Shown: positions 1-64,000 of the stretch, piece by piece
How positions within the stretch are numbered: position 1 is the first letter of the stretch
Layout: every line of letters starts with the position of its first letter
Source: Pavona decussata
Lineage: Eukaryota
DNA length: 64,000 nt
Assembly: GCA_977016875.1 (NCBI GenBank)
Contig: CDRNST010000273.1
Span: forward strand, 3,038,001 to 3,102,000
Reading direction: 5' to 3'
The notes under the pieces: generated by a model
Seen by the model: only the letters and a program-made list of their open reading frames with translations
Told to the model about the DNA's origin: nothing
Database searches by the model: none
Made by a program: the position numbers and the translations under genes

Positions 1-730
1 AAAGAAATAATGTAAGAATTATATTTTTCAGCTTCTGGCCACATAAATTTCAGAATTTTCGAAGTAGACTTGCCAGGATATAAGTGAGCACAGAAACCTG
101 GTCCTAGAGTTCCTCACAGCAAGAAACCCGAAGGTGGCAACAGACCAGTGAAGAATGACAATGAAGGTATGAAAATTAACTGTAATTTCTATGGTTACAA
201 ACATGAAAGAAACAGAGAGAAATGTCCTGCATGGGGAAAAACATGTGACAAGTGCAAGGGTCGAAATCATTTTAAGTCCAAATGCAAGAACATACATGTA
301 GTGTTGCAGTCCCAAGATGGTAATGATGATTATAATGACGGGTGGCTCATGGCTGTAAGCCATAAGGAAGATAGTATTAATGCTACTTTAACCATGAATG
401 ACCATGACGTCAGATTTCAACTCTATAGTACAGCCGATGTCAACATCATTTGTCAGAAACATGCAAGGAAACACCAGGTGTCTCCAACAACAGTACGTCT
501 GAATATGTGGAACAAAACTAACCTGAAGCCTCTGGGGGAAGCAGTACTAAGGGTTGCGAACCCCCATACTAGTGTAGAGTCCGAAGTAAAGTTTATTGTG
601 GTGCCAAACGGTTTTACTAACCTGCTAGCCCTCAAGACCATTCAGGAACTTGGTTTCATAACCATAAATGAGGAATGCCTCATTTCTCAGATCAATGCCC
701 CTCAACTTGGTGATCTAGGAGAAGCCACTC
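1..730 (+). mobile_element. Ty3/Gypsy LTR retrotransposon gag-protease remnant (truncated)
   Basis: ORF 148..951 has a gag CCHC knuckle (CPAWGKTCDKCKGRNHFKSKC) and a degenerate aspartic protease motif (VRFQLYSTADVNII, cf. FQLDSGA). Homology ends near LGDLGEATL. No RT or integrase follows. Confidence 0.85.
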
Positions 731-988
731 TGTTTAGTCTAGAATTTAATGAACAAACTTGGATGTCATTTTCTTTTGTCTTATTTTGTTGGACAATTCG
801 TGTTTTGTTACATAAGGTCATCGACACTTGGTCACATGATTACAGTGAGTTTGCCTTTTCGCAGGCACGCACAGATCATAGCGTATCTTGTTTTTTAAAG
901 TGTTTTTTCTGTCCGATATCCAGCACAGAATGTAAGATGTGGCTTAACTAGGGAATACCCCGCAACTCCAAAAGTAATCCTGAAAAGT

Positions 989-1180
989 GTGGCTACGTGG
1001 CTACGTAGATCATATACAAAGTGGTCAATTTTCAAAAGAGTGGCTACGTGGCTACGCAGATACAAAGTGGTCAATTTAATAGTGGCTAGTGGCTACGCAG
1101 ATACAAAGTGGTCAATTTAATAGTGGCTACGTAGCTACGCAGATACAAAGTGGTCAATTTTCAAAAATGGCTACATGGTA
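989..1180 (+). repeat. Tandem array of ~40-50 bp units (GTGGCTACGTGGCTACGCAGATACAAAGTGGTCAATTT), ~4.5 copies
   Basis: Units visible directly at ~989, 1040, 1082, 1122 and 1168. Confidence 0.9.
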
Positions 1181-1674
1181 ACCGTGGTAAAAGTCAAAAA
1201 CTACAGGTACATGTACATGTATGACTATGCCTCGTTCTTTTGCGTGAGACCACACGATTACGGTTATTTCACGAAAATTACGAACCATCGTTTGAAAACG
1301 CTCGGGAAGGGAGGCCAACTAAAATGGAGTTTGAATTATGTCCAGTCAACTATATCACGATGAAGCGGCGGTTAAAGCACCTGACATTTTGCTGACAACT
1401 TGTAAAGCACAATAAAACTTCGACAGCATAAACACAATTTCAGTTTGTAATATTCAGCCTTTATTAACAAAACAGCAAATGACTTCAAACCCTCATGCTG
1501 GCCTTCAATTTTGTAAGACAGTCAAAGTCATTTCAAAGCCACTGGTGTAAGTTATTAACTGTGGGGAGCCTCGGGGGAATAGCATGGAGTAAGACGTGCC
1601 GTGCTGAGCTCCGCAAAAGTTTTGATTTTAACTCAAACTGTCTAAAATTTTGTTGCCTTTGATTACTATGCTTC

Positions 1675-2490
1675 ATGTCAGGAAGTCGTCTTCGATCTGG
1701 AAAAATCTTAGCGCCTGAAGGAAGCAGTAAGCAGCAAAACCTCTCGGAGAAGAAAGCTGTAAACATTAGCGAGTCGAACATGGCCAGTGCCAAAGTACTC
1801 GAAGAACTGAAATCGATGAGACTTGACCTCACAGGTCAAATAACCAAACTTAGTGATGATTTAAAGGACTTCCAAAGAAACACAAACGAAAGGCTGCAAA
1901 AAATTGAAAGCGTCATGTTCAAAGTTGACGAAATAGATGGTTTGAAGACCAAGCAACAGCAACTAGAAGCCGATGTCGACAACATGAAGGAATCCTTGAA
2001 CTTTGTGAGCTTCAATGCCGAAGAGGTAGATAATCTTCGTAGAAGAAATGACGATCTTAAAAAAAGGTTGGAACATCTAGAACGGTATTCTAGAGAATTT
2101 AATATTCGAGTGCTTGGTGTTAACGAGGATGAAGGCGAAGACTGTATGTCGATAATTTTGGATTTCATCACCTCTCTTGGCTTCGAAGATGTAGCAGCCG
2201 AGGTAGAGAACGCCCACCGCACCGGGAAGAAACGAGACGATAAGCCAAGGCCTATTATCGCGAAGCTTTACAGCAGGCCTTTTAAAAGAAAATTATTACA
2301 AGCAGCAAAGAGTGCAGATGGAAAGGAAATACTACAAGGGGTAAGAATTGTAGAAGACTTTACACCTAGTGACTTTGATGCCCGCAAGAAAGCATTGCCA
2401 ACTATGAGAAAGGCGTATGAAGATGGTAAAAAGGTGCGTTTCACTAAGGGAAAACTTTATATTGACGGAAGAGAGGTTCCTGTCGCTTAG
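1675..2490 (+). CDS. LINE ORF1 protein (coiled coil + RRM/CTD, L1 ORF1p-like)
   Basis: Intact 271 aa ORF with heptad coiled coil followed by LERYSREFNIRVLGV, AHRTG, PRPIIAKL and KLYIDG, typical of L1-type ORF1. Confidence 0.92.
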   Translation: MSGSRLRSGKILAPEGSSKQQNLSEKKAVNISESNMASAKVLEELKSMRLDLTGQITKLSDDLKDFQRNTNERLQKIESVMFKVDEIDGLKTKQQQLEADVDNMKESLNFVSFNAEEVDNLRRRNDDLKKRLEHLERYSREFNIRVLGVNEDEGEDCMSIILDFITSLGFEDVAAEVENAHRTGKKRDDKPRPIIAKLYSRPFKRKLLQAAKSADGKEILQGVRIVEDFTPSDFDARKKALPTMRKAYEDGKKVRFTKGKLYIDGREVPVA

Positions 2491-2872
2491 TTTGGTTTCC
2501 GCTTTGCTAACTTTGTATTTTGTATTTTGTAAAATGGCAGTGTGATGAGACCTTTTTTATTCCACATTTGCGAGCACAGCGCAAAAATCATCTGCGCGAT
2601 GTCTTCATGTCCGCTGGGATTACTTGTGCAGTGTCGCACAAGAGCGAATTTTGAGCAATACTTCTTCCAAATCAGTTTGCTTATGTACGCTTTATTTTTA
2701 TTAGCAATTCTTTACAAGTCATATATTTTGTTTTCCTCAAACGTTTCTTGTGTTAGTATTAATTATTTACATCGTTCGATTATTTTAATTGTGTGGCTAT
2801 CAGTAATTAACCGGTATATAAAGATCCATCTTCTACTAAATTTAGACTATTTCACATGTCTTATCATCACAA

Positions 2873-5800
2873 ATGGTGAGAGGTAAATTCATTTCTTTAA
2901 ATACGAGAGGCATAGGCAACTATCGTAAACGACGAACTATATTTACTTGGCTCAGAAAACAAAAACCCGATGTTGTTTTCCTTCAAGAAACACATTCTAC
3001 CCAAGGGAATGAAGTTTCTTGGCAAAGAGAATGGGGTGCGACGCTGATCTGCTCTCATGGGGCTAATAATGCAAGAGGTGTCGCAATTTTAATCAGGAAT
3101 AATTTTGATTGTGTCATTAAGGAATCGGTTATTGATGCAAATGGTAGATTTATAATATTAAAAGTACTCCTGAGCGGAGAACCCGCTCTTTTAGTTAATA
3201 TATACGGCCCTAATCGAGACAAGGAATTGGTTGCCTTTTACCACACAGTCCTGCAAACCATTGTAAATAAAAACCTTGATGATATCGAGAACATTATCAT
3301 GGGAGGAGATTTTAATTGTCCTTTAAATCCAGTTATTGACAAAAGAGGTGGCAATCAAATCCCAAGGAAATCTGTGATTAACACAATTGAGCTGCTACAG
3401 TCCGAGCTGGATTTGCATGACATTTGGCGAGTAAAGAATCCAACAAAATGAAGCTATACCTGGAGTCAATCAAATCCTTTAATATTTTCAAGGTTGGACT
3501 ATTGGCTTATTTCAAATTTTTTATCTGATAATATTTGCCATGTTGATATGATTTCAGCCATAAAAACTGATCACTCCGCAATAGTGATAGAATTGCAGGA
3601 TGTTGAAGATCGGGTAAAAGGTCCTGGATTTTGGAAATTAAATTGCTCCCTTCTGAATGATAAAGAATACGTTAATGAATTAAATCTTCTCTTACCAACT
3701 TGGTTACGGCAAGGAAATCGAGAGTTAAGTGATCCGCGGTCTGTATGGGACTGGGTTAAATATAATGTTAAGAAATACTCTAGATTGTATTCGATGAACA
3801 AATGTAAACAACGACATTTAGAGGAACAACATTTAAACAGACAATTTCAAGAGGCTACAGCAGCATATCAAAACTGCCCCAGTCAAGAAAACTTATCAGT
3901 TTTAAATGTCTTGAAAGAAAAAATGGAACATCTGTATGAAAAAAAGGTGGAAGGTATAATAATCAGATCGCGCGCACGATGGCATGAACATGGGGAAAAG
4001 AATTCAAAATACTTTTTAAATTTAGAAAAACGAAATCACGTTAGGAAGCATATTCGGAAGCTTCGCCTGAGTGGAGTCATCTCAACAGACCCTTTCGAGA
4101 TATTAGATGCGGAGCGCGCTTTTTATGAAAATCTTTATAAATCTAGACGAGATGGTTCCGAAGGAAATAAGCCTAATTTTCACCTTGAAGACTTACCTAT
4201 ACCAACACTCTCTAATGATTCTTCTTATCTTGGTGAAGGATTAATAAGCAAAGAGGAATGTAAAAAAGTTTTAGATTCCCTTCCGTTAAACAAGGTACCC
4301 GGAAATGATGGTCTACCAGTAGAATTTTATAAGACCTTTTGGGATCTTGTAGGCGATCCCTCAGTTGAAAGTTTTAATGAATCTTTTGTTAAAGGAACAA
4401 TGAGCCCGTCACAAAGACAGGCGATTATTACACTTATCGAGAAAAAAGACCAAGATCGCTGTGATCTAAAAAACTGGAGGCCAATTTCCCTATTGAACGT
4501 TGATGCGAAGATAGCTTCAAAAGTTATCGCTGAAAGAATGAAGCGTCTTTTACCTGGGTTAATTCATAATAATCAATCAGGATATATCCCAGGCAGAAAT
4601 ATTAGCGAAAATATACGTTCAATTTTGGATATAATGGAATATACGAAAGTTAAGAAACTACCCGGTCTTTTATTATTTATTGACTTCGAAAAAGCTTTTG
4701 ACAGTCTAGAATGGGATTTTCTTGAAAAATGCTTAGAAAAATTCAATTTTGGACCAGATTTTAGAAGATGGGTGAAAATTTTCTACAACGATGTTCAAAG
4801 TTGCGTTATAAACAACGGCCTATGCTCTCGCTATTTCAATATAGCACGTGGAGTGAGGCAGGGGGACCCCCTTTCTCCCTACCTTTTTGTCACCGCAGTT
4901 GAAATACTGGCGATTGCTATAAGGAATCAAGAAAATATTAAAGGATTAACTATAGACGGTTTAGAAACTAAATTACTGCAATTTGCCGATGACACAACTG
5001 CTGTCCTATCAGACTTGGATTCAGCCCGAGCCCTGTTTGGATTACTTGAACGTTTTGAGAAAGCCTCTGGACTTAAACTTAATGTAGCTAAAACAGAAGC
5101 AATGTGGATTGGGTCACTTCAAAATTGTGAGAATGAACCACTAGGGGTTAAGTGGAAAACATGTGTCAAATTTTTAGGAATATATATTACATATGATGTA
5201 CAAATATTAGTAGAGAAAAATTTTAAGCAGAGGTTGAAAAAAATTAAGAACACAATAAATCTATGGAAGTCAAGAGGATTATCAATTCACGGCAAAGTAA
5301 ATATTATTAAAACACTTTTATTCCCAACAATGATCTATCCTAGTTCGGTATTATGTACTCCTTTCGAAGTCATAAAAGAATTCAACAGTTTGGTTTTTCG
5401 ATTTTTGTGGAACGGTAACGACAAGGTTATTAGACTCTCAACTTATGCACCTTATGACCAAGGTGGCCTCAAAATGCTAGATTATGAAAGTATGGTTAAA
5501 GCTTTAAGGCTAAGCTGGTTAAAACGAATAGTTGACCCAGATTACTCTGGATTTTGGAAGTCATATCTTGATCATCTTTTGGTATACGAAGGGGGGTTAT
5601 TTTTAATTCAGTGCAACTATGATATCAACCGATTAACAATCTCAGCGACCTTTTATCGAGAACTTTTGGAGTGGTGGTCTAAATTAAGAGAAGTCGAGGA
5701 CCCCGAAAATACATATAAGTATATTTTATGGAACAACAGAGATATAAAGATTGACGGCAAGAGTGTCTTTTATAAACATTTTTTTGATAACAATATCATA

Positions 5801-6580
5801 TATACAAATCATCTGCTTTATGATATGACAAATATTGAATCTTTCAATGTTGTCAAAGTTACTGGATTAAAGAACTCTAACTTTTTAGTATGGACCGGTC
5901 TAAGGCAATCAGTTCCATTGAGACTGCGCTTTCACATGCCCGACGTAGAAAATATCTTTGATTTAGAAAATTTTAAGTGCCGTGACTATTATCACTATCT
6001 TATAAAGCAAAAATACGAAAAACCAAATAAATGGGCTAAGTTGAGAGTGGAATTCGATCTAGAGGATAAGCAACTTTCGGAGGCATTTGTGATGCCACTG
6101 AGAGCCGCAAATGAACCTTATCTACGTTCCTTTCAATATAAAGTATTAAATTCAATTCTATACACAAATGAATTACTTTGTAAGATAGGCTATGCTTCTA
6201 ACCCCAACTGCTCCTTCTGTCATCACACTATAGAGACGATATCTCATATTTTCTTTGATTGTTCTTTCTCGACCTCCTTTTGGAATGAAGTTTGTGACAA
6301 AATTTTAAATAAACTAAACAGTTGCGTAGGCCTCTCTTTAAAATATTGTGAGATTATTTTAGGGTTCTTAGAGGAGGAGATGGATCTGCGAAACTATATA
6401 CTTATTTTAGGAAAAACGTATCTGTGGACTTGCCGGTGTAAAGAAACGAAACCATCTTTTAGCCACTTTAAGAGAATTTTATTAAATAAATATCAAACTG
6501 AAAGGCACATTTCTCTTAAATCGAATAAGACCAATTCGTTTAGGAAAAAATGGAGAATGTTTGAGGAAACGATTCTTTAA
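2873..6580 (+). pseudogene. LINE ORF2 (APE endonuclease + reverse transcriptase + C-terminal Cys domain) with one in-frame stop
   Basis: APE motifs (SLNTRG, FLQETH, MGGDFN, SRLDY, TDHSA). RT motifs (WRPISLLN, DFEKAFD, GVRQGDPLSP, QFADD). C-terminal CSFC...HIFFDC. ORFs 2873..3451 and 3494..6580 share a frame and are separated only by TGA at 3449-3451. Confidence 0.95.
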
Positions 6581-6794
6581 AGATCAAGTCCACAGTTATG
6601 TTAAATTACGTACTATATGTAAACTGTAACTGTGTAACTGTGGAAATAACAGGAAAAATGAAATGTAAGAAGTTGCCTGGCACTAATTTCGGTGTTGTAA
6701 AACTATTATTAACTATTGTTAGTTGTTGTTACTATTAACTATTGTATATTTGTATTGTATGTATGGCAATGAAATGGATTGTATTGTCAATAAA

Positions 6795-6836
<42 letters not shown>

Positions 6837-7226: not shown

Positions 7227-8155
7227 TTAAAATTTATAAATCTTCTTCACATCGTCCAGGAAAACCTTCCACAGATCCTCGTCGCGGTGCACGTACCTCC
7301 ACTTGAATTCTGCTAAATAAGAATAATGTTCCTTTTTCCGACCATGCGTTGTCAGTTTGGCTTTCACTTGCCGCCAGTGGCCTTCGATCTTGTTCGTGTT
7401 AAAGCCTTCCTCGTTGACAAATTCAAGCGAATGATTAACTGTCTTGTGAAGATACCCATCCTTCTGAAGGCTTACGTATGCCTTCCAGCCGTCCGACACA
7501 ATGGTTGTACCTGGCGCGATCCACTCCTTTATCAACGTTAATAGTGTCTTCACTTCGATCCTCAACTGTTACGATGAAGGATTTGCATGAATCTCCCTTG
7601 ATACCCCCGAAAACCCACTGGTCCTCCACCACATGCCCTCTGTGGTACTTTCTTTCTTGCTTTCGTCTATTTGGACTAGTTTTCCAGGACCGCCAATTTT
7701 CTCCCGCCTTTGGAAGAGTGAGACTTCACAAACCTCTCTGCAGAACATGTCCCAGTCCACCGCTGCATTTGTTCCAAGACCCAGTTGTTTCCTTATTTTG
7801 CCACTGATCGAGATCCTGGCACCACCAGTTCCCTCTCTGATACTTCTCTCACACCGGTGCCGTTTGCATTTATCTGTTTCCTGCATTCCCAGACATAACC
7901 ATCCGATTGATTGCCACGTGCTACCCATTTCATATCTGATCTGCAAATACCACAGATTCTGCTCAATGCAATGAGGCCCTCTTCTTTTAGCCAAGACAAC
8001 GTATAATCTTTCTCCCATAGATAGCTCAGGAGAAGGTCATCGTATCCAGTAAACCGCCCTTCAGCGTAGCTACGCAGGATGCCTTGTTCCTTGAGATCTG
8101 CAGTTGAGCAGCCAACCTGCACTCCATTTACACGCTGTCGTTTCACTGTATACAT
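7227..8155 (-). pseudogene. Merlin / IS1595 (ISXO2-like) DDE transposase, frameshifted
   Basis: Motifs spread over overlapping frames: N-terminal zinc ribbon (CGIC...WEC), KIGGPGKLVQIDESK, WVFGGI, IAPGTTIVSDGWKAY, HKTVNHS, NTNKIEGHW, YLAEFKWR. Confidence 0.92.
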
Positions 8156-8877
8156 CTTTCCCTTAACGTCTTATTTCATATCTGTACCTCGCAAGGACAA
8201 ATCTTGACTAAAGTAAAGTTTAATGTTACATGTGAAATGTCCATTCAACTAGCAAACATCGGTTTCTTTTGTCTTAGGTAATTACAAAGCAATGTCTTTT
8301 GTAACAGTGCTTAAGTGACAAATTTCACAACCTGCACATCAAAGATAAAAAAAATGAGGCCTAAAAGTGAATTGGCCCTCCAACATTTACTTATACACCA
8401 CCTTAAGGGGATGTGAGGACTCTTGTGAATTAACTGTTGTGAATGTTATACCAATCTACAGAAAAAGGCAGTGTTATTATTTATTTCACGTATTTTGTAC
8501 ACAACCATAGCCTATATTGTTTCATTGATCAGTTTATTAATTATACTAGAACAATAGAGTTTGTCCCTCACTCGTTGTTTATTCAATTCACTCGAGCGCA
8601 GCTCAGTTTTTTGTGATCTCCCAGCACCTGGGCCTTGCTTGAGAAGCGAATGATTTTTTCACCTGATCCCTTCTAAATTCTTTTTGCATGCACCAGTATG
8701 GGATTTTAGTCTACGCATATGCAACGTCTTGACCACCTTACTTCTATGAGTTTTTATTTTAGCACCAAATTTCACAAGTCCCCCGAATTTATTTGAAAGA
8801 CAGTAGGCTAAGTATCACTTTTAAAAACTCAATCAACTACAAAACAAAAAGATTAAAAACCGTGCCGCTTTCATTTA

Positions 8878-10735
8878 TGCAACGCAAGCAAGATTCACAC
8901 TATTCATTTCAACCACGTTCACGACTCGCAAAGCTTCGGAAACAACCAGACAGCACTTGGGCTCTCCTGCAAAGGCGATTTATTTCACTTCCTGATCCAT
9001 TCCAGCAACTTTTCCCGGAAGATGTTTGGAATTTCATCCGCAATAAGTCGCATTCCTTGAGCACCAATCCCAGATACGTATCAACCAGTCTCATCGCTAC
9101 GACTGCCTTCATCGCAGGATTGGCAAGTATGCTGATCACTTCCACACTATCTTTGTTGGCCCACCAACAACCGGAAAATCACAAGCCATCAAAGAATGCG
9201 CACTCTCCCCAATGACAGCAGTGCTGAGCGAGATGGATTCCGCTTCACCAGTCATTCAAAAGCGCACATCGTCCGGACTAAAAAAAAAAGCTGACAACAA
9301 CAAGTGCTACCTACTGTCCGGAGAAATTTATGACGTCCTATACAAGCTGCTCAAGTCAGACGAAGAAAATGCCACAAGAGACGTGCAAGATCTCTGCCAG
9401 TTGTTTTCGGGAGAAGAAGCTTCCTACCGGTACATTACTGAAAGAGCACGCGAGATTTCTGTACACTGGGAGCGACACAAGTTCCGTTTGCAGCTCGTGT
9501 CTTGACTCTCTTGGACCAAGCACATGGTTTGATAGACCGATTTCTGATAACATTTCCAAAATGCCTAAGACCAACCCCACAGCAGAGATTGCCCACCTGC
9601 ATACTTCGCGATCTTCATACAAACTGTTCAAACAAGCCAATGAAGCAGTCGACACCCTCAACAAAGAGTTCATCATAGAAGTCAATGAAGCCATTACAGA
9701 AGGCCAAACACCGCCCAAAACAAAAAAGTTTGACATCATCCTGAGAGAAGCAGCTGCCCTTCACGTCATCAATCATGTCGCTTCCGAGCTCCTCCAGCAA
9801 AGGCAACCCACACAGCCACCAGAAGAAATTGAAAAGTCAACATTGCTCCGAGCAATTGACTACGTTGGTTGGGCAGAATCACAAAAAGACATCTTTGTTG
9901 AGGTTAGCACTCCATAGACATCGATCATAGAAGAGTTAATGAGACCACACATCGCATACGGAAGTGCAAGTAAGCTAGGTTAATAAATCTCTAAAGTTAA
10001 TTTTTATTCAAATGGGGAGTGTGAGAGTAGTAATTTTAAGCCGCACCTTCAGGGCCCAATATTCTTAAATCTCACGTGACTAGAAAATTGTTCCGCAATC
10101 GTAATAAATTTGTAAACCAAATTGCGGCCGGTAGGACCTGCAACGACAAGCAAAACTTGCCTCTCAAACTCTCGTACTATTAACCATAGAAAATGAGTCG
10201 GCTCGTTTAGAGTATACTCTGCCACATTTACAGTACCTAAACCCGAACTAAACAAGTAATCCAATTTATGTTAAACACCTGATCGATCAAGAATGTTTTA
10301 ATTGTTTTCACAGTTCCTGAATAAATTTGTATCACCAACGATGGACGAGGTGAAAGGCCAACCCACTTCAATGGCAATGAAGACCGCATGTCTTCTTTTT
10401 GGTGGACCGCTGTTGACCTACAAAGCCTTCAAGCAGTCAGGACCGCGCGGTCTACGGGAAATCGCGAGCACCAAGTTCAGCGATGCTATCCAAGCACTCG
10501 AACCACCTGGCCTTGGTAAGGTACGCACAGTGCGAGTTCGTTATGTTTCCAATCCTGTCACGGTCTTCATCAAGGAAGACCCAGAGAAAATTCAGTGGCC
10601 GTCGGATTTTTGCAGTCAAACTGAGTATGGATCGCGCTTTACTGCCAACAAGTGAACAAAAGTATAACCACTGCAATCAAGTGTGCACTGGTTGATGCTG
10701 ACTTCCTGCCGCAAGAAATGTTTCCCGATATTTAA
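8878..10735 (+). pseudogene. DUF3987/YfjI-like P-loop NTPase (putative helicase), two exons, frameshifted
   Basis: Walker A GPPTTGKS at 9158-9181, then TSSGL, Walker-B-like YLLSGEIYD and LCQLFSGE, as in DUF3987-type AAA+ proteins. Plausible intron 9903-10313 (GT...TTCACAG). Confidence 0.6.
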
Positions 10736-11583
10736 CAATCAAACATCCAGAACTTATAATGACAATGATGGTTTGACTATTTATCCCTTCACGTCGTGGA
10801 AAATTCGTTTTTCTATGAGTATCTCGTTGTTGTAAATATGTTTATACAAGTGGAAATTGAAGCTTACAAACGTCAATTTAACGCGTCGAATTATTGTGCG
10901 GACACAACATCGTGGAAAATTCTATGAAATCAGACAACGAATTAGAAAAAGGACCTGTTTTACTTGGATTCTGTGAGCCACGAATGCTTCAAGCTGTGCT
11001 TCGAGTGGAATGGATCCAACCAGTGGATTCGATCATGGTATATGGATTGTGGAAGAGACCAACTTGATCCAGGTTTGGAGATAAGTTTAGTTAATGCTGG
11101 AATCAACCTGCCAGTTTATGGTAGCCAAGATATTCCCCTGGATATTGGTATCACAGCCTCTACACTTCCTTTTACAGTTAACCTACCTCCAACACAAAGA
11201 GCATTTGAAGGATACTCACTTTGTAGGGACCTTATCCAAATACACAGATCGTTTTCACTGAAGTTGCCTGCCAACGAAAAATAAGTGAGAGACAAAGGCT
11301 TGCTTCTTCCTGGAATAAAGTTGCCAATTACATTGAGGCTGAGACGCAGCAACTGCACACTTGTCTTTACTCAAATTGCGACCCTGTATCAGTTGGTAAG
11401 ATGCTAGTTAGCTTGAATCATGCTTGGAAATTCTTTAAGGCCACGCATGCCAAGTACCTGCCGGGCATGCAGGAAAGGAAGCGCCTGTAACAAGTTGAGC
11501 AAAGGTTTAAGTCACTCCAAGAGTCAATGAATGATTTGATCGAAGAATGCGAAAAACAGATGAAGACAGACCAAGCCACCCCA

Positions 11584-26906: not shown

Positions 26907-26911
26907 TATTG

Positions 26912-53574: not shown

Positions 53575-56390
53575 GTCGTTTTGTTTTGTACTCTGGCATT
53601 TAAATGTCTTTTCGAGCGAAGGAAAACTATTGCAATTCGGAGTCGGCCCTAGTACGCTTGCACTGCCCTCATAAAAGCTGCGACAAGTTTTACATGAACA
53701 AGAAAAATTTAAATGAACACTTCCACTTGAATCCATCGCATAGACCAGACTCTTTGGTGACGACTCGAGTTTGTATTACTGCTAAGGAATGTGCAGAAAA
53801 ATTCCTTGACGATGAAAAAAACCCATACTCTAGGAACGTTTGTGTGTAAACTTCTTACGGATGAAGAACTTCAACTGTATGCACTGCCAAGGATTGCCAA
53901 AATTGTGACACCCGTGGACTATTTATTACAAGAAACTACAGGTACACTTAACGATGTACACAAAAAGCTGGTCAAGTTTAAAAATGACTTTAAAAATGAC
54001 TTTAACTCTCTCTTTTGTCAAGGATCACCGGCTGAAACAAGCCCAAGAGAAAAACTGGCGGAAATAGTGCAAAGTAATCTACCTCATTCGTGTGATTGGA
54101 TTATTGAATTGGGCAATGGTACTTTGTTTAAAGATGCTATCATGCCTAAAGTGTTCCAAAGAGAGTATCATGCTTTTGAAGAATTTTCTTGTGGTATGGC
54201 TGGGGCTTTTGGAATTGGGCAAAAAGATGTGCAAGACACCCTCAGGAACAAATGGGGCAAAAAAAAAACTGGAAACAGTGATTGGAATAAATCCAATTTT
54301 GAGCAAATATAAAATTTTTGGCAAACTCAATGACCACACGCAAGAGCTTTTGGATGGACTATATTAATGGACTACACTGATGGGTTCCCGTGGCTCAAAT
54401 GGTCTCGCCACTTCACAGGGGAGACAAGTGTCAGAGTTAAACTTGTTGAGCCATACAATTTAATGAGCACAGTCTTAACAGTTGCCCTTTGGCTAGGTAA
54501 TGATGACTATGACACTGTAAGAAAGTGTGCTGAACCAGTTTTTGAAAAACTGAAAGATCTCAAGTCAATAAAACATCCCATCAGTGGAAAAGACATTACA
54601 ATCGTAAGGCGCAGCTGTGGGGATGGGAAGGAGAGAAGATCATCAACTGGTAATTCATCTGCCAAGTCCTCCTATCCCATCCCTGAATCCCCAGAACATC
54701 AGAGCCAGCTTGGAGACATGAAATTTGTATGCCCACAACCAGTGTGGACAGTTGTAGAAACTGAGGTGCTGGAAGAACAATTCCATGAGACACTTAATGG
54801 AAAGGCTCCAACTAAGCAAAAGCGAAGAGAATTCGCAAAACAAAACCTGGGTAACATGGGAAGAAAAATATATGTGGAACACCCCTTGCTGATTTCTACC
54901 CAGGTACAGCCCACCTTGGGTTTCGATCAGTAGAAACCTTGTGTTTAAGGATAGCTAGAATTGCATCAGGTTTGTATCTTATCCTATTTTGAATTAACAC
55001 TAGAATGTGACAATTCACAAGACATAATGCACATTAGCCCTATCAATTTTAAAGAAAAGTAGAGAAAGTTAAATGTAGACCATTTGTTGAACCCCCTCCC
55101 CCCTAATCACTGAAGAATTTGACCATCAAAGGTAGGACACCAGAGTGTGGATCAAGTGTTTACATGTACTTGAAATGGAAGTAGTTAAGGACAGAATGAA
55201 GAAATTATTTTGAGCTCATCTCACCACTTTCTTTTATTTTTCTGTGCCCCTGAAAAAGGATTTTTATCAAATACTCTTCAATATAAGAAAAATTTACTGT
55301 ACTAGATTTGACCCCACCCTCCAGCCTCCACTTCCTCAGCTCAGGCACAACACTGATGGGTATATGATGGTACACTCTTTGATTGAAAAAGAGGATAAAC
55401 AGCAAACATAAAAAATTTGTTGATCGCAAAGCAATGAAAACCACCTTAACACCTCATCTAGGCTGCAGATGAGAAATGGTTGTCGTGAGGGTATGCACTC
55501 ATCAAGACAAGCATTTCCAGTAAAAAAAAAATTGCAAAAGGGTGTACCAAAACAAACACTCCACTTACAATAAGCTTAATGGTGGTAATCATTTTCATTT
55601 GCCACAAAATATGCAAGTGTACAGGCAAATCAAACGAAATCCTTAAAATTTTTTGGTAGCTAAACCATGCATTACAAATTATTAGATAATTAGTACAATT
55701 CAAATATTACAGCTGTTTTGGGGAGTGACCAGTCATTCTTGCATGCACTTAAGAAAGGCTTTGCCAAGTCAGTAAACATAGAAGAAAGAACTATCAAGTT
55801 TGACGAAGTTGGTGTGCTTGCATTTCCTGAAAGAATGCCCGCCATTTTAAGCCAAGCAGGGTTTCAAGGAACTTTACTTGACATTCTCACCACATTCTGC
55901 AGTGGGCTTGACAAAGTGTTTAAAGGTCTCCTTCAAACATCCCAGGAGTTAACTGGTGATAAGTATGGAGCTCATGCTCGTGTTCTCCTTGGTTTTCAAG
56001 CAGTTCAAATCTTTGGAAGTAACTGCATTATGAAAACAAATGCATTATGAAAACAAATTGTGACATATGTTCCGTACTATATTGACAAGGCCATTGCTGA
56101 TGGAAAGATGGTTGGTCTTCCCATTACTTTGGCAAACTTCAGTGATGCCACCATGGAAACAGCACATAAACACAACAAAAGGAAATCCTTGCTTTTTTCT
56201 TGGGGAAGAGCCAGCCCAATATCAAGATGTCAGTACCAAGACCAGGTGATCGAGCAGCAGTTTCAAAATGAAGTCTTCAAAATAACCAACCGAGAGAGCA
56301 CGCCACAAAAATCGTCTTGAAGGAAACCTGAAAAAAGCGGAAAGCAATTGTTGAGAAAGAAAGCGGAGTTAAACGAGTGGTAATTAAAGC
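53575..56390 (+). pseudogene. RAG1/Transib-fold DDE transposase with N-terminal C2H2 finger (spliced, frameshifted)
   Basis: CPHKSC..HFHLNPSH finger. DYTDG (RAG1 D600-like), VALWLGNDDYDTV, CGDGK (D708-like), PGTAHLG (DALH-like), NFSDATMETAHK (E962-like). Intron ~54970-55712. Confidence 0.75.
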
Positions 56391-57139
56391 TATATAATTA
56401 TTTATGAATTATATAATGCAAATTATATAAACAGCTACCTTTTGCAGGTAGCTGAAATTACTTAAAGTCTTGGAATTTTAGTGTGTATATAGGAAATTAA
56501 ATGACAACAAGCTGGAACAATTTTTTTATGGTTAGCAAAAATGTGAAGGGAAGGAAGAAACCAGTCAAAATATGGTTGTGATAATCAAGCAAATATTTTT
56601 CAATGCCAAAATCTAATAATGGGAACTCTTGAATATAACTTAACAAAGTTTGTAAGTACATCGATGCCTAATCAACAAGAATTTATAGCTTCCAAGGTTG
56701 GTAACTCAGATCTATTTTAAATTCAATTGTATTGGTTTTAATCCTGTAAAGCACTTGTTCTTTGCTGACCACAAACTGGAAGACAGCATGCAAATGCCAA
56801 ACACAAGCAAAACTCCTTCTGATGATCAAAAAAGCAGAGAAGATGATGGAGCAAGTGATGATGAAAATGACTTGGTAAGCAAAATTTAAACTGAATCCAG
56901 TATTAAGTAATAAAATATGTGTATAAAAATGGACAAAGTTTTGGTTTTATAGGCACTTGGGCTTAATTCTGCTTTAAAAAGGCTAGATCTAAATTAATTG
57001 GTTTAAATTGACAATGAAATATGCTGTAATTATAATTTGTTACCGTTCAATCCAGGAAGGGCAAAAACTATGACCTCGGGTAAAAAATTCGAAAAATCAT
57101 GAGTCAGTCAGTTAAGTTAAAACCACTTACTGCTTTCAG

Positions 57140-58042
57140 GAAGAGGCGACTGCAGAAGACTGTCTTGGGCAGGCTCACGTCCCAGCAGTTCAGATTGTTC
57201 CTCAAGGATCAGAAGCAGATGTCCACTTATTAGCTGACGACCTTTTCAAGTTTGCACAGGATAACTTCCACAACACCGTGATTACGCAAGTGACTCAAGA
57301 ATCTGCTTCAAAGTTTAGAGAAAATAGCTTTCCACCCTCAAATCTCAGTTTTCATTTGCAGTCTCTTGAAACAAATTTCGTTTCCTGGAAACGTACGGAT
57401 GCGAGAGTCAGCAAAGAAGTGTTCAAATGTAAAATCTTACCAGGTGCTGTAAGCCGTTGTTTTAGCATTCAATCGACAAAAAGTGAAGCAAGTCAAAGCA
57501 ATAGAATGATCATACCATTTTCTGATATTCTTGGATTGGATGTCAAAGAGGACTCGATCGTAATGGATGTTGGTGTACTACCGAAGATGGAGCAAAGGGT
57601 CTCATCGAGCAAAACAGTCGACGAGTCTTGTCATACATCGAAGGGCAAGTGGAAGGAGGAAACTGTCAGTGATCAAGCTAATTGTGAACCACCTTACCAA
57701 ATATGTGTTAAAAAACAGCGTTTCAACGACCCAAGCACCATTCAGCTGAACAAAATCTTCGCAGAAATTTCATCTTTGAAGCTAGCAACCGAAAATGGCC
57801 TTCAAGATTCTTATCCAAGAACACCGCCTTGTGCGGAGACCAATCCTGAAGAAAAATATCCCATTGTTAAAGATTCAACACTTGTTAGAGCCGGGCAGCT
57901 GGCCTGTTTACGTCTTTTCCAGTGCCTTCCATCACAGGATCAAACAGAATTCGTAATAACGATGTATTCATCGATGGAAGAGCGATTCAATAGCCTTTTA
58001 AGGAAAAGGATTGGATTAACTGTTCAGCCACCTTGCCAATGA
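57140..58042 (+). CDS. Unknown 254+ aa ORF inside the TIR element (last exon of the transposase or a second gene)
   Basis: Open frame 57278..58042 preceded by a TTTCAG acceptor near 57139 and a small acidic exon at ~56780-56873. MIIPFSDILGLDV is reminiscent of PH-like folds. Confidence 0.5.
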   Translation, partial: EEATAEDCLGQAHVPAVQIVPQGSEADVHLLADDLFKFAQDNFHNTVITQVTQESASKFRENSFPPSNLSFHLQSLETNFVSWKRTDARVSKEVFKCKILPGAVSRCFSIQSTKSEASQSNRMIIPFSDILGLDVKEDSIVMDVGVLPKMEQRVSSSKTVDESCHTSKGKWKEETVSDQANCEPPYQICVKKQRFNDPSTIQLNKIFAEISSLKLATENGLQDSYPRTPPCAETNPEEKYPIVKDSTLVRAGQLACLRLFQCLPSQDQTEFVITMYSSMEERFNSLLRKRIGLTVQPPCQ

Positions 58043-58942
58043 ACTGCGTTACACTCAATTTTTTAAAATCTTCAGCTCCATTACTTAAGCAAAGCGGATT
58101 ATTCCTCAATCCTTCTACATATCCTGTGTATCGTGCGACAGCGAGTTGAGTAGACTTTCAAATGAAACTGAGTGAAACTGACCGCGTTACTCCGCCATTT
58201 TAAAATTCGAAAGGAACACTTAAGGCCGCGCAGTTGTGGGATACGGCATTAAAATTTCTCTCCCCAGTCCCCCGAGTTACGTCACCAGATCACCTGGATG
58301 GCATTCATTTGAACTCTAGGATCCAGCATAAGCTATATCGTAGTCTCAGAGGGGCAGTCCTGCGATCTTTGCGCCTTTTGCCAAGTTCTCCCTCCTCGGA
58401 AAGAGTTTGTCAAGTTTGCTTTATTCTGATACAGATCTTTACATGTTTTGCCAGCTCTTAGTTGTGCCCTATGCCGAGTCTGATGTTTTACTGCTACGTT
58501 TACCTATTATTTGTGTCAGCCTTATATATTTGCTGTAAGCCACTGCCCCTTTTTGGGCACGGCTACGTTTGATTCAGCTACACAGGTGTTTGATTGAACG
58601 ACTCTTTATACAGTCGTTACTACACATAGCACATATGTACTCCTTTCTGGCTGCACACGTATAATTATTTTACTGGCTCCGGCTCAATGTTAGGTACTGG
58701 CAGTTACCGCATGAGTGTACAATCCTTTCTGACCGCTCAGTTTTTGGCTGTGTCCTTTGAGCTCGGTATTCTGCCTTTGCTTAAGGCACTATAGTACTTC
58801 TGGCGCTAAATAACCCGGTTATTTTTTTAGTTCATTTCCGTCACTATGAAGAGCATTATTTCCAGTGCTGTCCCCATGCAGATCACGTTAATTTTTGTTA
58901 CCGTAATCTAGTTTCTGATCAAAGAAATTTTATTGATAAGCC

Positions 58943-59710
58943 ATGCCACCCAAGAAGCGTGCACATTCCGATCAGTCCAACATGCAAAGGAGAAAGAAAC
59001 GCAAGCGAGTCTCTGACCTTTCTGAAGTTTCTCCAGCCGTAGCTGTTGCCGCTCAAAACCAGAGCAACCACCACAACCAGAACTTGATCTCAGTTGATCT
59101 GCGAGCTCTATCCACCTCCATCATGACGACCATTCCCCAGACGATACAACAAGCATTCGGATCCGGGGGAACCCACTGCTTGGTTCAAGACCCCAGAGCA
59201 TCTTCAATTTCTCCAGTTAAAAGTGATCGGGAGCATTCAGCCAGTGAGGCCATTCAAGGGGATATTACAGCTATCACACAAGGTACTCAGCCTCAGAGTC
59301 CCACTCGGCAGCCATTTTCGCGCATGGCCATAGCTCTCGGCTTTAGAGTTAACCCAAAACTCAAAGCAAAAATTTGGGGTAACGAATATGTTGATTATGG
59401 CAGGTTGCTTCATTGTCCCCAAATACCAATCGTTATTCCCTGTCCCTAACTTCCTCAAGGACGTCATCTACTCAGCCCCAGTTGACACTAGAACCTAGCC
59501 AGCCACCTAAGAAGATTGATAACCTCAGTGAGTGGTTGTCAGCTTTTAATACTTTTGTTGCCATTTATGTAGAGAAATTTCCTATTGAGGCTCCTAAGTT
59601 GATGAAATACTGTGAGGTCGTGAGCGACATTGCATCCAAACCAGGTGACTGGTCATTTTACGACGAACAGTTTTGATACATAAGACAGTCAGCTCCCGAC
59701 CAATACCCCT
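58943..59710 (+). pseudogene. DIRS/Ngaro gag-like ORF (frameshifted, interrupted)
   Basis: KLKAKIWGNEYVDYGRLL...EWLSAFNTFVAIY...LMKYCEVV...WSFYDEQF*YIRQ..QYP. Confidence 0.85.
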
Positions 59711-59956
59711 CACGGCGCTTTCAGAGCATCAGATCCGGACATTAGCTTGGGGAACCGCAAAATCTCGACAACTTATTAAATTTCAAGTTAATACTTCACT
59801 GGCGGTGTTTGCGTGCCTTGGCCTATTCCCCTGTACTCTATAAATAAGCTGTGTGGTTCTTAGTGTTGAAAGAAATGTATGCGCAATGAGCATTTTTAGA
59901 ATATTCAGGTAACAGAGTAGTCACGTAGCTGTAAAGGCGGCTGTCAAATGTAAAGC

Positions 59957-60422
59957 GCTAGTTTATTTTTGACCTTTACGTCTCCTTCACGGGAGTTATG
60001 GCGGGCGTCGCATGTTACGAAATAAAGGAAGTTTCTTTCACGATTTCGTGTCTTTGGAAGTTTTCCTTTTGCAGTCATTACTATTTATGATTAGTTAAAC
60101 CTTTAATAAAGTAATTTAGCTAACGCTGTATCAGAGAGATTTTCACTGAACACCGGAATTATAGTGCTTTTAATATTTTGGTATTCCTTGCTAGTTTATT
60201 TTTGACCTTTACGTCTCCTTCACGGGAGATATGGCAGGCGTCGCATGTTACGAAATAAAGGAAGTATCTTTCACAATTTTGCGTCTTTGGAAATTTTCCT
60301 TTCGTAGTAATTACTATTTATGATTAGTTAAACCTTTAATAAAGTGATTTAGCTAACGTTGTTTCAGAGAGATTTTCGCTGAACACCGTGATTAGTGCTT
60401 TTAATATTTTGGTATTCTTCGC
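59957..60422 (+). repeat. 233-bp tandem duplication in the 5' non-coding region of the Chapaev/RAG1-like element
   Basis: GCTAGTTTATTTTTGACCTTTACGTCTCCTTCACGGGAG starts at 59957 and 60190. The copies are slightly diverged. Confidence 0.92.
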
Positions 60423-60432
60423 TGTCGCAGCC

Positions 60433-63400
60433 ATGTCAGACGAACATACTAAGCACTTAATGGAATTCTGTCGTATCTGCGGGGAAAAACTAAGTAAATG
60501 TAAAAGTTCCAAAGCTGAAACCAGCTATCTTTGTTCCTCGAATGTCCAATTTATGCAAGATAATTTTGGCATAACCGTGGAAAAGGACATCAGCGATGTT
60601 CATCCTCCTCGTTTTTGCAAGAAGTGCCATCTCTCGCTTTCTCACGGCCTCGTGTTTTGGGAACCACATCAAGAGGAAGAATGCAAAACTTGCAATCTTG
60701 CAACTGTGGTAAAAAAGGGAGGGAGACCGTCAAAACTTGACTTCTGCAAATTGGTGGAAAATGTGCCTTTGAATCGAGTGGAAGCTTTCGGGGAAAAGTT
60801 TAACTTTGCCGGAGAGGTTCCAAGAGAATACTTCTGACCGGTTTGTTTGGATATTTTAGACCAACCTGTAGAAACTGACAGCCAGCATTACTTTTGCTCT
60901 GACTGCATCACGAGGGTGGTAACAACCTCTTCTTGTTTGACCTGCCCCTTATGTAAAGTGGACTCGTTAAGTTCCATAAGAGTTCTCACTCGTATGGTGC
61001 TAAATTTTATAAAATATCTCCCGGTAACTTGCAAGACATGTGGCAAAAACGCGAGATATGAGGACTGTGGTGATCATGAATGCGCAACTGATAACCCCAA
61101 ACCCAGAGCACCTACAGCAGGTGTTGTACAGGCTGAACCTGTCCCCGAGATTCTTCCCGCGAAAACTGTACAGGGAAACGCACTCCCGAGGCAGAACCAC
61201 TTGGAACTTTGTTTGTGAAAGCAAAGTTAGGGTCTTCCACTGACTTGAAAACTGTAACTGTGAAAACTGGTGGAAAGGTAAGACTATGCATGAAAACTCT
61301 TCACAATCAATAGTAGTGTTTTCCCTAGACTCAAAATCTTGTACAAGTCCTCAGACGTGTTTATTTATTCTTTATAGTCATTTGACTTGAAACATATGCC
61401 TCGTGCTCACAAGAAATCCTCAGATGTAACAGGGCGTCACCTTCTTAGAAGAACCAGACACCTTGAGAATGTTGGTGCGTCCATAAGCCAAGGCCAGATG
61501 GATGTCCATGTCATGCACAGCTTGGGACTAAAAGAAAAGCGGGATCGTGAGGCTATCCTCCGTGAAGCACTGGGGAAAGAGCTGGTTCTTGAGCTTCCCG
61601 AGGGCCAGACTCTAGCTATGAAGGTAGACTTAAGTATGTCATGGCATGGACTAAATAAACTCCGTCGGTAAGTCGGTGTCGGTTTAACCCAACAATGCCG
61701 AATTTACAATTCACGTTATGTATATTATCTTTTGCATCTATGTTTAGATGATTCAAACAATGGGGTATCAAGATGGACAGTGAAAAACAAAACAGCGAGT
61801 ACAGAAGTCTACTCAACTACAGGAGGAGGACCTTCAAGAGGAGATGCTACCATTGGAACAAGAGGAGGGGCAACAAAGTGGTAACTCTGATAAAACCAAC
61901 ACCTACAGCCTATGTGGTGGACCTGAAAGGCAAAGTGGTCTCCTACATCGACAAATGTGACAAGTGAGAACTGACAAACTCGTGGATTTTTCTTTCAGTA
62001 TCTTGTTTTGCTTTAGTTGGATATTTCATTTTTCTCTTTTTTGTTTTGGTTTGTTTCCTTTGATAGAGCTAAGATCCTGACGTGGCATGCAGGTTGCATA
62101 CCACACAACATGGTGTACGTAAAACTTGGTGGAGATCATGGGCAGGGCTCTATGAAAATGGAGTTCCAAATTGCCAATGTTCCTAAACCAAACTCGCCCC
62201 AGAACACAGTTGTGTTTTCAATTTTTGAGGGTAAAGATAGATGTACAAGGAGCGATCTTGCTACCATCCTCCAAGGGTGCAGGGAACAAATTAAAGATCT
62301 TCACAGTTCAACCTGGAGGTAGGTTATTTCTTTTTGTATGGGACAAATAATGTTTGATTTTTATTACATTTTTCTATGTCAGCATGTTATTGTTTGGTGT
62401 CATTCCTGCAGGGAGAAGGCATTTGTCTGTTTTCTTTATGGTGACTACAAGTTTCTATGTAAAGTCATGGGAATTTCCGGAGCATCAGGTAAGTGCTTCA
62501 ACATTAGCTATAAATAGAACATCACAGGGACATTTGATAAAGCATATAACACTTAAAACTAAATGTTGGTCACATGCTTTGTTCCTGGTCGACATCCTTG
62601 CCTTTGGTGCACCATACTGGCCAGTGAGATGCTATTGGATAAGGATAAGAGATCACCTAATTTCCTGCGTTCCCTTGAGCATCTAACCCAACAATTTGCA
62701 GAGTTCCAGGAAAGGGGGCAGGGTGACATTAAAAAAGCTAAAAACTTTTTCAATATTATTCAGAGTCCCATGTTGGACATCCAGTTTGACCAGGTACTGA
62801 CAATGAATAATTTCATCAAAACAATGTTGTAACACTAGCTAATCTCCATACAACACTGGCAAGATGGACAACAAATCTTATTTTCTGTTATCATTTTATT
62901 TTTCAGATTTGCACACCAGGACTTAACATAAGCCTGGGCTTATTCCTCAAGTTCTATGAACTTCTTGATGACTGTGCTAAGCTTGCCGAGAAGATCACCT
63001 TCAAAATGACAGAGGACACCTCAGCACTTGGGGATTCCGAGCTAGAAACACTGGTTAAGAACCTCCATCAAGTAAGGCAACACAAGGCTGCAGCAGCAGT
63101 TTATCTTGAAGAAGCTCAGCAGGCTGAGGAATATGCCTGCTATGTGGCCAACTGGGGGGTGCAAGCTGACCAGCCCGACTGCAATCCTGTTGTACAGCAA
63201 CTGCTTCAACATGCACATACACTAAAGCAGAAAGCTCATCAAGAAGTAAGCTAACCATGAGTACCGTTTACTGTTATATACCCTGGATCACACTCCCATA
63301 CACTCACTTGCCTATGACCTAGCAAAAGCATATACTGACAATATTCAAAGTTATTCAACACTTTCTGTTTGTACAGTCGACTCCCGATAACTCGAACCTT

Positions 63401-64000
63401 CAAGGGAAATTGAAAAAGGCTTGAGTTATCGGCAGTTCGAGTTGTCGAGGGTAAAATTATATAGGAAAATGACCTAAAGGGAAAGGAAAATTATCTCGAG
63501 TTAGCACGAGGTTTGGGTTAGCGACAGTTCAAGTTATCGGGAGTCGACTGTACTGTAGAAAAAAGGTGCCTAACAGCTCAAGGCTGAAAACAAGTTCTTG
63601 CGACAAATTGGGAAAATACATCAAGCACTGGAGGATTTCCTTCAAACAATTAATGTCAAGCGCCAAGCATATCATAGGCATAGTTTAGTTGGCAATCATA
63701 TTAGCATATGGCTTCAGGTATTGTAGTGTTTGTAGATGACTTCAATAATACAAAGCTGTTTTAACTTCACATACATGTCATAAAAACGACTTGAATGACA
63801 AAAAATTGGGCACTATTGAGTGGTTGATTAAAGAACAACTGTATAAATGTTTTGTTCATTCTTTTAACCAGAGAACAACACGAGAATGAGTGGAACAATA
63901 CCAAATGTCACCAACGAGTTCTGTCCATCTTTGGCCAGTGAGGCAGTCAAAGTTCAAGACAAGTTCCAAACACTGTTGACATAGTTTTCCACCTGCCATT
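60433..64000 (+). pseudogene. RAG1-like/Chapaev transposase: Chapa (RAG1 N-terminal-like) domain + RING + zinc finger + DDE core, at least 9 exons, inactivated
   Basis: HTKHLMEFCRICG..DVHPPRFCKKC..WEPH..CKTC. RING *PVC..QHYFCSDC..CPLC. CKTC..HEC. LAMKVDLSMSW, VKLGGDHGQGSMK, PNSPQNT, FLYGDYKFLCKVMGISGASGRHPCLWC, PGLNISLG, QAYH..SLVGNH. GT donors at 61278, 61668, ~61964, 62319, 62489, 62794, 63247 and 63718. Confidence 0.88.
63374..63550. mobile_element. 177-bp Tc1/mariner-pogo type MITE in an intron
   Basis: TA|CAGTCGACTCCCGATAACTCGAAC ... GTTCAAGTTATCGGGAGTCGACTG|TA. Confidence 0.92.

Follow-up and report, generated by a model that had tools for sequence, protein, structure and literature searches.

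Co-oriented transposons in a domain of at least 106 kb in Pavona decussata: a possible unistrand piRNA source

In the flamenco locus of Drosophila, transposons that invade the genome leave antisense copies in a one-way transcript, which thereby acts as a heritable memory of them. A 64-kb stretch of the Pavona decussata genome (contig CDRNST010000273.1, positions 3,038,001 to 3,102,000, hereafter the window) raises the question whether a locus of this kind may be found there too. An initial annotation, made by eye, had placed 16 of 17 transposon remnants on the + strand.

We gauged this bias by tests that handle both strands identically, namely counts of stop-to-stop ORFs and of Pfam domains. 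Among ORFs of at least 150 aa, 21 were on the + strand and 5 on the - strand of the window, while composition-preserving shuffles led us to expect 0.2 and 0.5, respectively, with no advantage for the + strand. At a threshold of at least 100 aa the ratio was 48:27 with shadow ORFs included. When every ORF that is merely the opposite-strand shadow of a longer one was dropped, it was 46:15, and 10:0 for ORFs of at least 200 aa. The strand bias is real and not an artefact of reading; the strand-symmetric counts exclude the by-eye preference for + strand fragments that the initial annotation had considered as a cause.

A Pfam search with every ORF of at least 80 aa, carried out on each strand separately, gave the same picture: transposon domains were found in about 12 + ORFs and in 2 - ORFs. 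The + set consists of three Mutator-like matches, two RVT_1 matches, L1 endonuclease/zf-RVT, P2RX7_C, DUF6589, DUF1280, RING/RAG1_imp_bd, PML_C and Exu_RNase_H_like. The - set is limited to the Merlin domain DDE_Tnp_IS1595, which bears out that Merlin is the sole clear - strand transposase, and the Helicase_C domain of a RecQ/WRN-like ORF. Where tested, + ORFs without a Pfam family also proved to be genuine transposon coding remnants (88-948, 45065-45469 and 47739-48182). The first of these had no match in Pfam or PDB searches. The other two occur at the same loci and in the same order, in open frames of up to 998 aa, and are therefore two pieces of one protein family. Several of the earlier family names (Gypsy, pogo, R2, CR1, Academ, EnSpm, DIRS, Kolobok and THAP) were not confirmed by Pfam or PDB searches, and the ORFs likely meant by Kolobok match the Mutator-like model. 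A PDB search with 57116-58039 likewise gave no match and did not confirm RAG1 kinship of the nested transposon.

Most of the window is sequence with further copies in the genome, and these copies set the boundaries of the elements listed in Table 1. On this basis about 14 independent elements lie on the + strand and 2 on the - strand (two-sided binomial p about 0.004). The latter are Merlin and the C2H2-like ORF, the second - strand coding remnant; two other - ORFs sit within + elements. The one-way orientation thus stands, while the count of 16 of 17 and its p of 3e-4 have to be replaced by these figures. We found no segmental duplications within the window that would make the insertions non-independent, so the element count is not inflated. 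Merging neighboring same-strand ORFs (gaps 1500-3000) abolished the significance.

Table 1. Elements in the 64-kb window, with the basis of each assignment and related copies in the genome (C numbers denote contigs).
Positions	Strand	Feature	Basis	Copies and remarks
83-948	+	Retrotransposon polyprotein fragment (earlier called Gypsy)	287-aa ORF 88-948	151 protein-level matches, many 25-36% identical within 1000-1400-aa open frames; DNA copies at 91-95%
1567-6830	+	L1-type LINE, full-length, very young	ORF1 1663-2487, ORF2 3452-6577; RVT_1, Exo_endo_phos, zf-RVT; human L1 ORF2p match E=1.7e-81	100% identical copy on C291; several at 96-99%
7230-8036	-	Merlin/IS1595-type transposase remnant	DDE_Tnp_IS1595 E=6.8e-18 (7230-7568); N-terminal ORF 7572-8036 resembles IS1595 zinc-ribbon/HTH clusters	Copy number low
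8763-11487	+	Low-copy run of seven ORFs of at least 80 aa (perhaps the earlier AcademH)	ORF lengths alone; weak AAA match only (E=0.06)	Two weak relatives
12122-16279		Two-gene DNA transposon	DUF6589 ORF 12301-12738 (+); RecQ/WRN-like helicase ORF 14331-14813 (-), Helicase_C, WRN/BLM/RecQ match E=1e-16	Collinear copy on C486, 87-94%; interrupted by 683-bp high-copy repeat 14858-15540 (>25 copies at 97-98%)
16270-17245	+	Transposon fragment	221-aa ORF; weak Ulp1-protease-like match, Peptidase_C48 E=0.058	Copy on C90 at 94%
20119-20580	-	C2H2-like zinc-finger ORF, 154 aa, low-copy family	Weak zf-C2H2_4	12 genome matches, 29-85%, mostly stop-bearing
22197-24634	+	Mutator-like DNA transposon remnant	ORFs 23408-23728, 23652-24143; Pfam Mutator E=1.2e-45, model matched by two ORFs	Copy on C89 at 91%
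24629-27713	+	Repeat with Cys-rich ORFs	ORFs 25509-25727, 26395-26688; the P2RX7_C match among the + ORFs of this half is probably 26395-26688, judging by its Cys motif	Copies on C120, C233, C519 at 92-94%
31973-34299	+	GC-rich repeat family	ORFs of 203 and 214 aa	78-86% identical copies, several of them on C144; 11 matches at the protein level (60-86%)
35003-35741	+	Reverse-transcriptase fragment, non-LTR or other retroelement	RVT_1 E=1.2e-6 (35003-35260) and E=0.003 (35264-35569)	Copy at 84%
37436-41600	+	Mutator-like DNA transposon, second ORF DEDDh-exonuclease-like	Mutator E=6.4e-17 (39154-39573), Exu_RNase_H_like (39659-40732), PML_C (40714-41301); genomic copies	Copies on C101 and C382 (82-94%) without internal 38697-40917
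44619-48524	+	Degraded transposon copy, 800-1000-aa protein without Pfam family	ORFs 45065-45469, 47739-48182	
49270-49336	+	SINE tRNA-like head	Rfam tRNA, 30.6 bits	Related copies at -3.8 kb and -8.6 kb (direct) and -129 kb (inverted)
50186-51566		MITE-like non-coding repeat, 1.38 kb, without coding sense	Terminal inverted repeats of about 190 bp; inverted self-match 50190-50378	>40 copies at 94-99%
52084-59707 (52084-52931 + 58297-59707)	+	Older element, split by the nested insertion 52932-58297	ORFs 52443-52949, 58940-59446	Halves adjoin each other on C166 (89-91%)
52932-58297	+	Nested DNA transposon (earlier called RAG1/Transib-like)	ORFs up to 308 aa; DUF1280 match; one - ORF, 53305-53775	Copy on C49 at 93-95%
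59711-64000 (runs past window end)	+	DNA transposon with RING and RAG1-N-terminal-like ORFs	RING fingers, RAG1_imp_bd E=4.8e-5 (60343-60834)	Copy on C47 at 90-95%

The elements belong to many unrelated families (LINE, LTR-type, Mutator-like, RAG1-like and unnamed) and are of mixed age, as the initial annotation had said. Identity to the nearest copy is 100% for the L1, 98-99%, 93-95% or 87-91% for other insertions, and goes down to 78-86%. Given this spread from 100% to about 78%, one orientation has been kept repeatedly over time.

The co-orientation extends upstream of the window. In the flank from -40 to -8 kb, a stretch that had not been chosen in the initial annotation, ORFs of at least 150 aa are distributed 15:2 (+:-), and the blocks from -42 kb to the window start 5:1. 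Left of -42 kb the bias is weak (13:8 blocks). Upstream ORFs of at least 200 aa stand at 36:10, and many of the co-oriented ORFs beyond -42 kb belong to a single virus-like element. Significant Pfam matches were confined to transposon and virus types, both among window ORFs of at least 80 aa and among ORFs of at least 150 aa in the upstream 200 kb; over the whole 264 kb, neither strand carried a host-type domain in ORFs of at least 150 aa. A transposon-only domain of at least 106 kb emerges, which starts about 42 kb to the left of the window and continues past its right end; the window makes up its right-hand part. The earlier statement that host exons are absent is uncontradicted for ORFs of at least 80 aa, exons below 80 aa being beyond the reach of the search. 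The proposed check for strand bias in the flanks was borne out on the upstream side for about 42 kb and not much further.

Why should elements of so many unrelated families, whether old or recent, have been retained with their coding sense almost exclusively on the + strand? Our leading explanation, which we advance tentatively and would put somewhat below an even chance, is a long-lived unit transcribed from the - strand, in which sense insertions would be removed or antisense ones favored. Most plausibly, this unit would be a unistrand piRNA source locus. Its promoter would lie to the right of the window, its precursor transcript would contain the transposons in antisense orientation, and from this precursor PIWI proteins would load 1U piRNAs directed against active transposon copies. 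A piRNA cluster is defined by such a precursor, here from the - strand, and by strand-specific small RNAs of 24-31 nt with a 1U bias. The genome does contain genes with a Piwi domain (PF02171, common to AGO and PIWI) on three contigs: C169, with a tandem array of at least four, C233 and C182. These genes, the co-orientation over families and ages, its extension over about 42 kb upstream and the unistrand clusters of sea anemones are all compatible with the piRNA-cluster reading. The L1 has identical copies elsewhere and thus is not obviously silenced, which counts against it.

It is also quite possible, though less likely than not, that the window is an untranscribed transposon graveyard, its shared orientation an accident picked out from many screened windows. 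A p of 0.004 predicts such a window by chance about 39 times among the roughly 9400 64-kb windows of the 602-Mb genome, and about 3 times among the roughly 700 that were screened. This speaks for an accident and counts against the piRNA reading, as do the weak bias beyond -42 kb, where one virus-like element accounts for many of the co-oriented ORFs, and, more weakly, the RNA data. Of the sampled words from 26-36 kb, a share of 0.00-0.02 occurs in 13 probable RNA runs of the species. For 41.6-47.6 kb, four probable RNA runs from four studies yielded no contigs except on a 70-bp repeat, bearing in mind that precursors, introns and rare RNAs easily go missing from assembled contigs, which also lack strand information. 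The loss of significance upon merging adjacent ORFs also favors chance. However, the unselected 42 kb upstream are biased in the same direction, and the longest ORFs are one-sided both in the window and upstream of it, which speaks against an accident. Should the bias come from chance or from intronic selection, we would be dealing with an ordinary transposon graveyard.

The identical orientation, with no piRNA role, would also result if the domain sat in one giant intron or a set of introns belonging to a host gene or long non-coding RNA on the - strand, because sense transposons bring polyadenylation and splice signals and would be purged. In mammals, an antisense bias of LINE and LTR elements in introns is established and provides a precedent: there, co-orientation relative to a transcription unit results from selection against sense insertions. 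Over most of the domain the CpG observed/expected ratio is low (about 0.5-0.65), as in germline-methylated transcribed invertebrate DNA, a value that is patchy and stands without a genome baseline. However, intronic biases are usually moderate, nearer 60-80% than the roughly 88% found here, and least marked for DNA transposons, the predominant class at this locus. An intron also needs flanking exons, and the domain search of ORFs found none in the window or the 200 kb upstream. No splice joints were present among RNA contigs of the four runs on 41.6-47.6 kb. Finally, an intron or intron set of at least 100 kb would be exceptional in a 602-Mb invertebrate genome. We therefore consider this explanation doubtful.

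A mechanistic bias unrelated to transcription, whether by a constant replication-fork direction that would bias endonuclease-dependent insertion or by selection against head-on transposon promoters, seems very improbable: the domain of about 100 kb is replicon-sized and L1 insertion in human cells shows a mild fork-related preference, but the measured effects are small and would not affect LINEs, LTR elements and cut-and-paste DNA transposons in the same way.

If we return to the unistrand piRNA source, the nearest known loci by host are the clusters of other cnidarians, which belong to the same broad group. In Nematostella, 402 of 457 piRNA clusters are unistranded (PMC5731801), and in Anemonia viridis 61-68% (PMC5793845). 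Since one-strand sources are the majority type in cnidarians, a locus of such a kind is expected to exist. Those clusters, however, were defined via one-strand small-RNA density above background under proTRAC or piClust criteria and the present locus via transposon orientation, and a co-oriented transposon-trap architecture is not described for cnidarian clusters in these reports or in that on reef corals (PMC5731801, PMC5793845, PMC13343488). In reef corals, the transposon density of piRNA clusters is even reported as lower than expected (PMC13343488), which counts against the piRNA reading.

The architecture itself is closer to that of Drosophila flamenco and flamenco-like clusters (PMC10643416, PMC11400887), which are large gene-free loci with nested fragments of mixed age, mostly in one orientation, and with recent insertions (here the L1) alongside older relics. 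The window is likewise transposon-dense and, as far as Pfam matches of ORFs of at least 80 aa can tell, free of host genes, and its orientation majority is strong at the level of elements, long ORFs and Pfam-positive ORFs. It differs in content. Gypsy-type endogenous retroviruses dominate flamenco, whereas the window holds a single LTR-type polyprotein fragment beside the L1, the reverse-transcriptase fragment and mainly DNA transposons (Mutator-like, Merlin, RAG1-like, DUF6589 and unnamed). Moreover, promoter, precursor and strand-specific piRNAs have been demonstrated for flamenco, whereas the present locus, in another phylum, is known from sequence alone. It seems unlikely, though worth stating, that a non-bilaterian animal possesses flamenco-style traps of at least 100 kb that are read from one strand, retain all transposon classes, DNA transposons and retroelements alike, in antisense and turn them into piRNAs. 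A verified trap would mean that the flamenco architecture is not insect-specific and is able to keep DNA transposons in check in addition to retroviruses, and would offer a sequence-only route to such loci in genomes without small-RNA data. If flamenco-style traps do exist in a non-bilaterian, the design would predate the cnidarian-bilaterian split.

The window (G000:C273:3038001-3102000) is part of a 6.1-Mb contig in an assembly of 602 Mb, has a G+C content of 39% and contains no runs of N. The initial annotation had placed nearly all of its transposons on the plus strand, with the caveat that reading by eye might favor plus-strand fragments. Stop-to-stop ORFs, tallied by an identical procedure on both strands, display a clear plus-strand excess: 21 versus 5 ORFs of at least 150 aa, 48 versus 27 of at least 100 aa and 81 versus 67 of at least 80 aa. 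After removal of opposite-strand shadow ORFs, the ratio (plus to minus) was 46:15 at 100 aa or more and 10:0 at 200 aa or more. Shuffled sequences with preserved local composition are expected to yield only 0.2 (plus) and 0.5 (minus) ORFs of at least 150 aa, so the long ORFs of the window are coding remnants; since the shuffles had no plus excess, the asymmetry is not due to base composition.

All ORFs of at least 80 aa were also scanned against Pfam, in four batches with the strands kept apart. Plus-strand ORFs matched Mutator-like transposases (3 ORFs), RVT_1 (2 ORFs), Exo_endo_phos and zf-RVT (both from an L1), P2RX7_C, DUF6589, DUF1280, RING/RAG1_imp_bd, PML_C and Exu_RNase_H_like. On the minus strand, the only matches were DDE_Tnp_IS1595 and Helicase_C. 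As both of these strand-symmetric tests show the plus excess, the worry about reading by eye is answered: the strand bias is a property of the sequence.

Element boundaries and ages were taken from genomic copies found by DNA searches of the genome, in which copy counts are lower bounds (about 40 scored candidates each). This gave about 14 independent elements on the plus strand versus 2 on the minus strand, with two additional minus-strand ORFs located within plus-strand elements. The bias thus holds in substance, and its significance weakens from the 16 of 17 first reported (3e-4) to about 14:2 (two-sided binomial, p = 0.004). An attempt to count elements by merging ORFs into blocks was replaced by these copy-based boundaries: its p value swung from 0.0002 to non-significant, because merging inevitably shrinks the count on the majority strand. 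The earlier binomial had assumed independent insertions, and this assumption is borne out, since a self-comparison of 264 kb (the window and 200 kb upstream) revealed no segmental duplications.

The identity of the elements to their nearest copies ranges from 100% down to about 78%, from which it follows that one orientation has been retained repeatedly over a long time. The explanation that we rank first, tentatively, is a long-lived transcription unit on the minus strand, most plausibly a unistrand piRNA source. Co-orientation by chance under heavy screening is also possible and takes second place: a 14:2 ratio would be expected in about 39 of the approximately 9400 genome windows of this size, or in about 3 among the approximately 700 screened.

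The bias extends beyond the window. In the 200 kb of upstream flank examined (negative coordinates), the plus excess is kept to about -42 kb: blocks in this stretch number 5 plus versus 1 minus, and 15 plus- and 2 minus-strand ORFs of at least 150 aa lie between -40 and -8 kb. Left of this point it is weak (blocks 13:8), and many of the co-oriented ORFs there fall in single large elements (Polinton-type, BEL/Pao and Penelope-like). Window and biased flank together thus make up a strongly co-oriented domain of at least 106 kb.

Features of the window and its upstream flank (window coordinates unless prefixed; L008, L009 and L010 are pieces of the flank)
Feature	Position	Strand	Remarks
Retrotransposon-type polyprotein ORF	88-948	+	Large family; open copies of 1000-1400 aa elsewhere in genome
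L1-type LINE	1567-6830	+	ORF2 vs human L1 ORF2p, E=1.7e-81
Merlin	7230-8036	-	Transposase remnant
Two-gene element	12122-16279	DUF6589 ORF +, RecQ/WRN-like helicase ORF -	Split by 683-bp high-copy repeat
683-bp repeat	14858-15540		Young, non-coding, abundant; >25 copies at 97-98%
C2H2-like ORF	20119-20580	-	Second minus-strand coding remnant; low-copy family
Mutator-like transposon	22197-24634	+	Pfam
RT fragment	35003-35741	+	RVT_1
Mutator-like transposon	37436-41600	+	Deletion-derivative copies elsewhere
Transposon with one 800-1000-aa protein	44619-48524	+	Pieces: ORFs 45065-45469, 47739-48182
SINE head, tRNA-like	49270-49336	+	Sole Rfam match in the window
1.38-kb repeat	50186-51566		Young, abundant, non-coding; TIRs of ~190 bp; >40 copies at 94-99%
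Older element	52084-59707	+	Interrupted by nested transposon 52932-58297
Transposon with RING and RAG1-N-terminal-like ORFs	59711 to window end	+	Pfam, genomic copy
Polinton/Maverick-type element, virus-like	L009:3375-7343; L009:8114 to L010:2909; L010:2892-9853	+; -; +	~20 kb, 100-120 kb upstream
Penelope-like retroelement	L008:5827-8650; -124365 to -121158		759-aa ORF with RVT_1 and GIY-YIG

Several elements could be characterized further. The L1-type LINE has a full-length, 100% identical copy on another contig (C291) and several others at 96-99%; its family was active very recently. The DUF6589 and RecQ/WRN-like helicase ORFs are kept together in a copy on contig C486, and the two-gene element looks like a DNA transposon with a RecQ-type helicase. 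In the longer Mutator-like transposon, the second and third ORFs (39659-41301) encode Exuperantia-RNase-H-like and PML C-terminal (DEDDh exonuclease-type) domains. Its copies on C101 and C382, in which the coding core of 2.2 kb is missing, resemble non-autonomous derivatives. For the 800-1000-aa transposon protein, which matches no Pfam family, the genome contains dozens of open copies; its family may be a superfamily absent from profile libraries. ARAGORN predicted no tRNA genes in the window. PDB sequence searches with ORFs 57116-58039 and 88-948 found nothing, so that kinship to RAG1 and to Gypsy, respectively, has no support from that route. Of the names originally proposed, Gypsy, pogo, R2, CR1, Academ, EnSpm, DIRS, Kolobok and THAP were not confirmed by the Pfam and PDB searches.

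Two regions were inspected as possible minus-strand coding stretches. A run of minus ORFs at 25-29 kb gave low-complexity translations without matches, and the conserved Cys-rich ORFs of this region sit on the plus strand. At 17-21 kb, where minus ORFs outnumber plus ORFs, no ORF other than the C2H2-like one looks coding.

In the flank, the Polinton/Maverick-type element encodes a poxvirus-A32-type packaging ATPase, a phage T7 tail fibre-like protein, a phospholipase-A2-like domain and, within a 1323-aa ORF, an endonuclease VII; Pox_VLTF3, HNH and YqaJ matches lie nearby. An inverted repeat of 859 bp (99.65% identity) flanks the Penelope-like element and includes another GIY-YIG ORF, encoded on the other strand.

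A transposon-filled intron of a minus-strand gene ranks third, and we regard it as unlikely. No host-type domains were found among ORFs of at least 150 aa on either strand in the 200 kb upstream, and no splice joints were seen on 41601-47600 in four RNA runs from four studies. Contigs of these runs could not be placed on 41601-47600 except at a 70-bp patch, from which they run on into unlike sequence. A run search with words from 26-36 kb found four DNA-like runs, all from one study, and 13 probable RNA runs of Pavona decussata contained 0.00-0.02 of the sampled words. The RNA runs were compared as assembled contigs, and the scarcity of RNA contigs at the locus is weak negative evidence on its transcription, since such contigs carry no strand and drop rare RNAs.

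Polyadenylation hexamers (AATAAA and ATTAAA) proved uninformative as a test of the transcript strand. They number 123 on the minus versus 101 on the plus strand, the opposite of what a protected minus-strand transcript predicts, and are commoner there because of the plus-strand coding bias (AATAAA includes a stop codon). CpG observed/expected ratios and base skews, profiled over these 264 kb alone, are patchy, track individual elements and mark no clean domain boundary. A replication-linked or other mechanistic bias comes fourth and seems improbable.

As regards the most plausible form of the first-ranked reading, a unistrand piRNA source on the minus strand, genes with a Piwi domain, which AGO and PIWI proteins have in common, are present in the genome. 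At least four form a tandem array on one strand (G000:C169:1564823-1796393), the bulk of each Piwi domain being encoded by one large exon, and one more copy is on the opposite strand; C233 (at about 4.76 Mb) and C182 (at about 0.10 Mb) carry further Piwi-domain genes. A limited literature search found no description of co-oriented transposon traps from cnidarians. Conservation of flamenco-like clusters across Drosophila has been described (PMC10643416). Coral clusters defined by small RNAs are reported to have a TE density below expectation (PMC13343488). Among cnidarian piRNA clusters, 61-68% are unistranded in Anemonia viridis (PMC5793845), as are 402 of 457 in Nematostella (PMC5731801).
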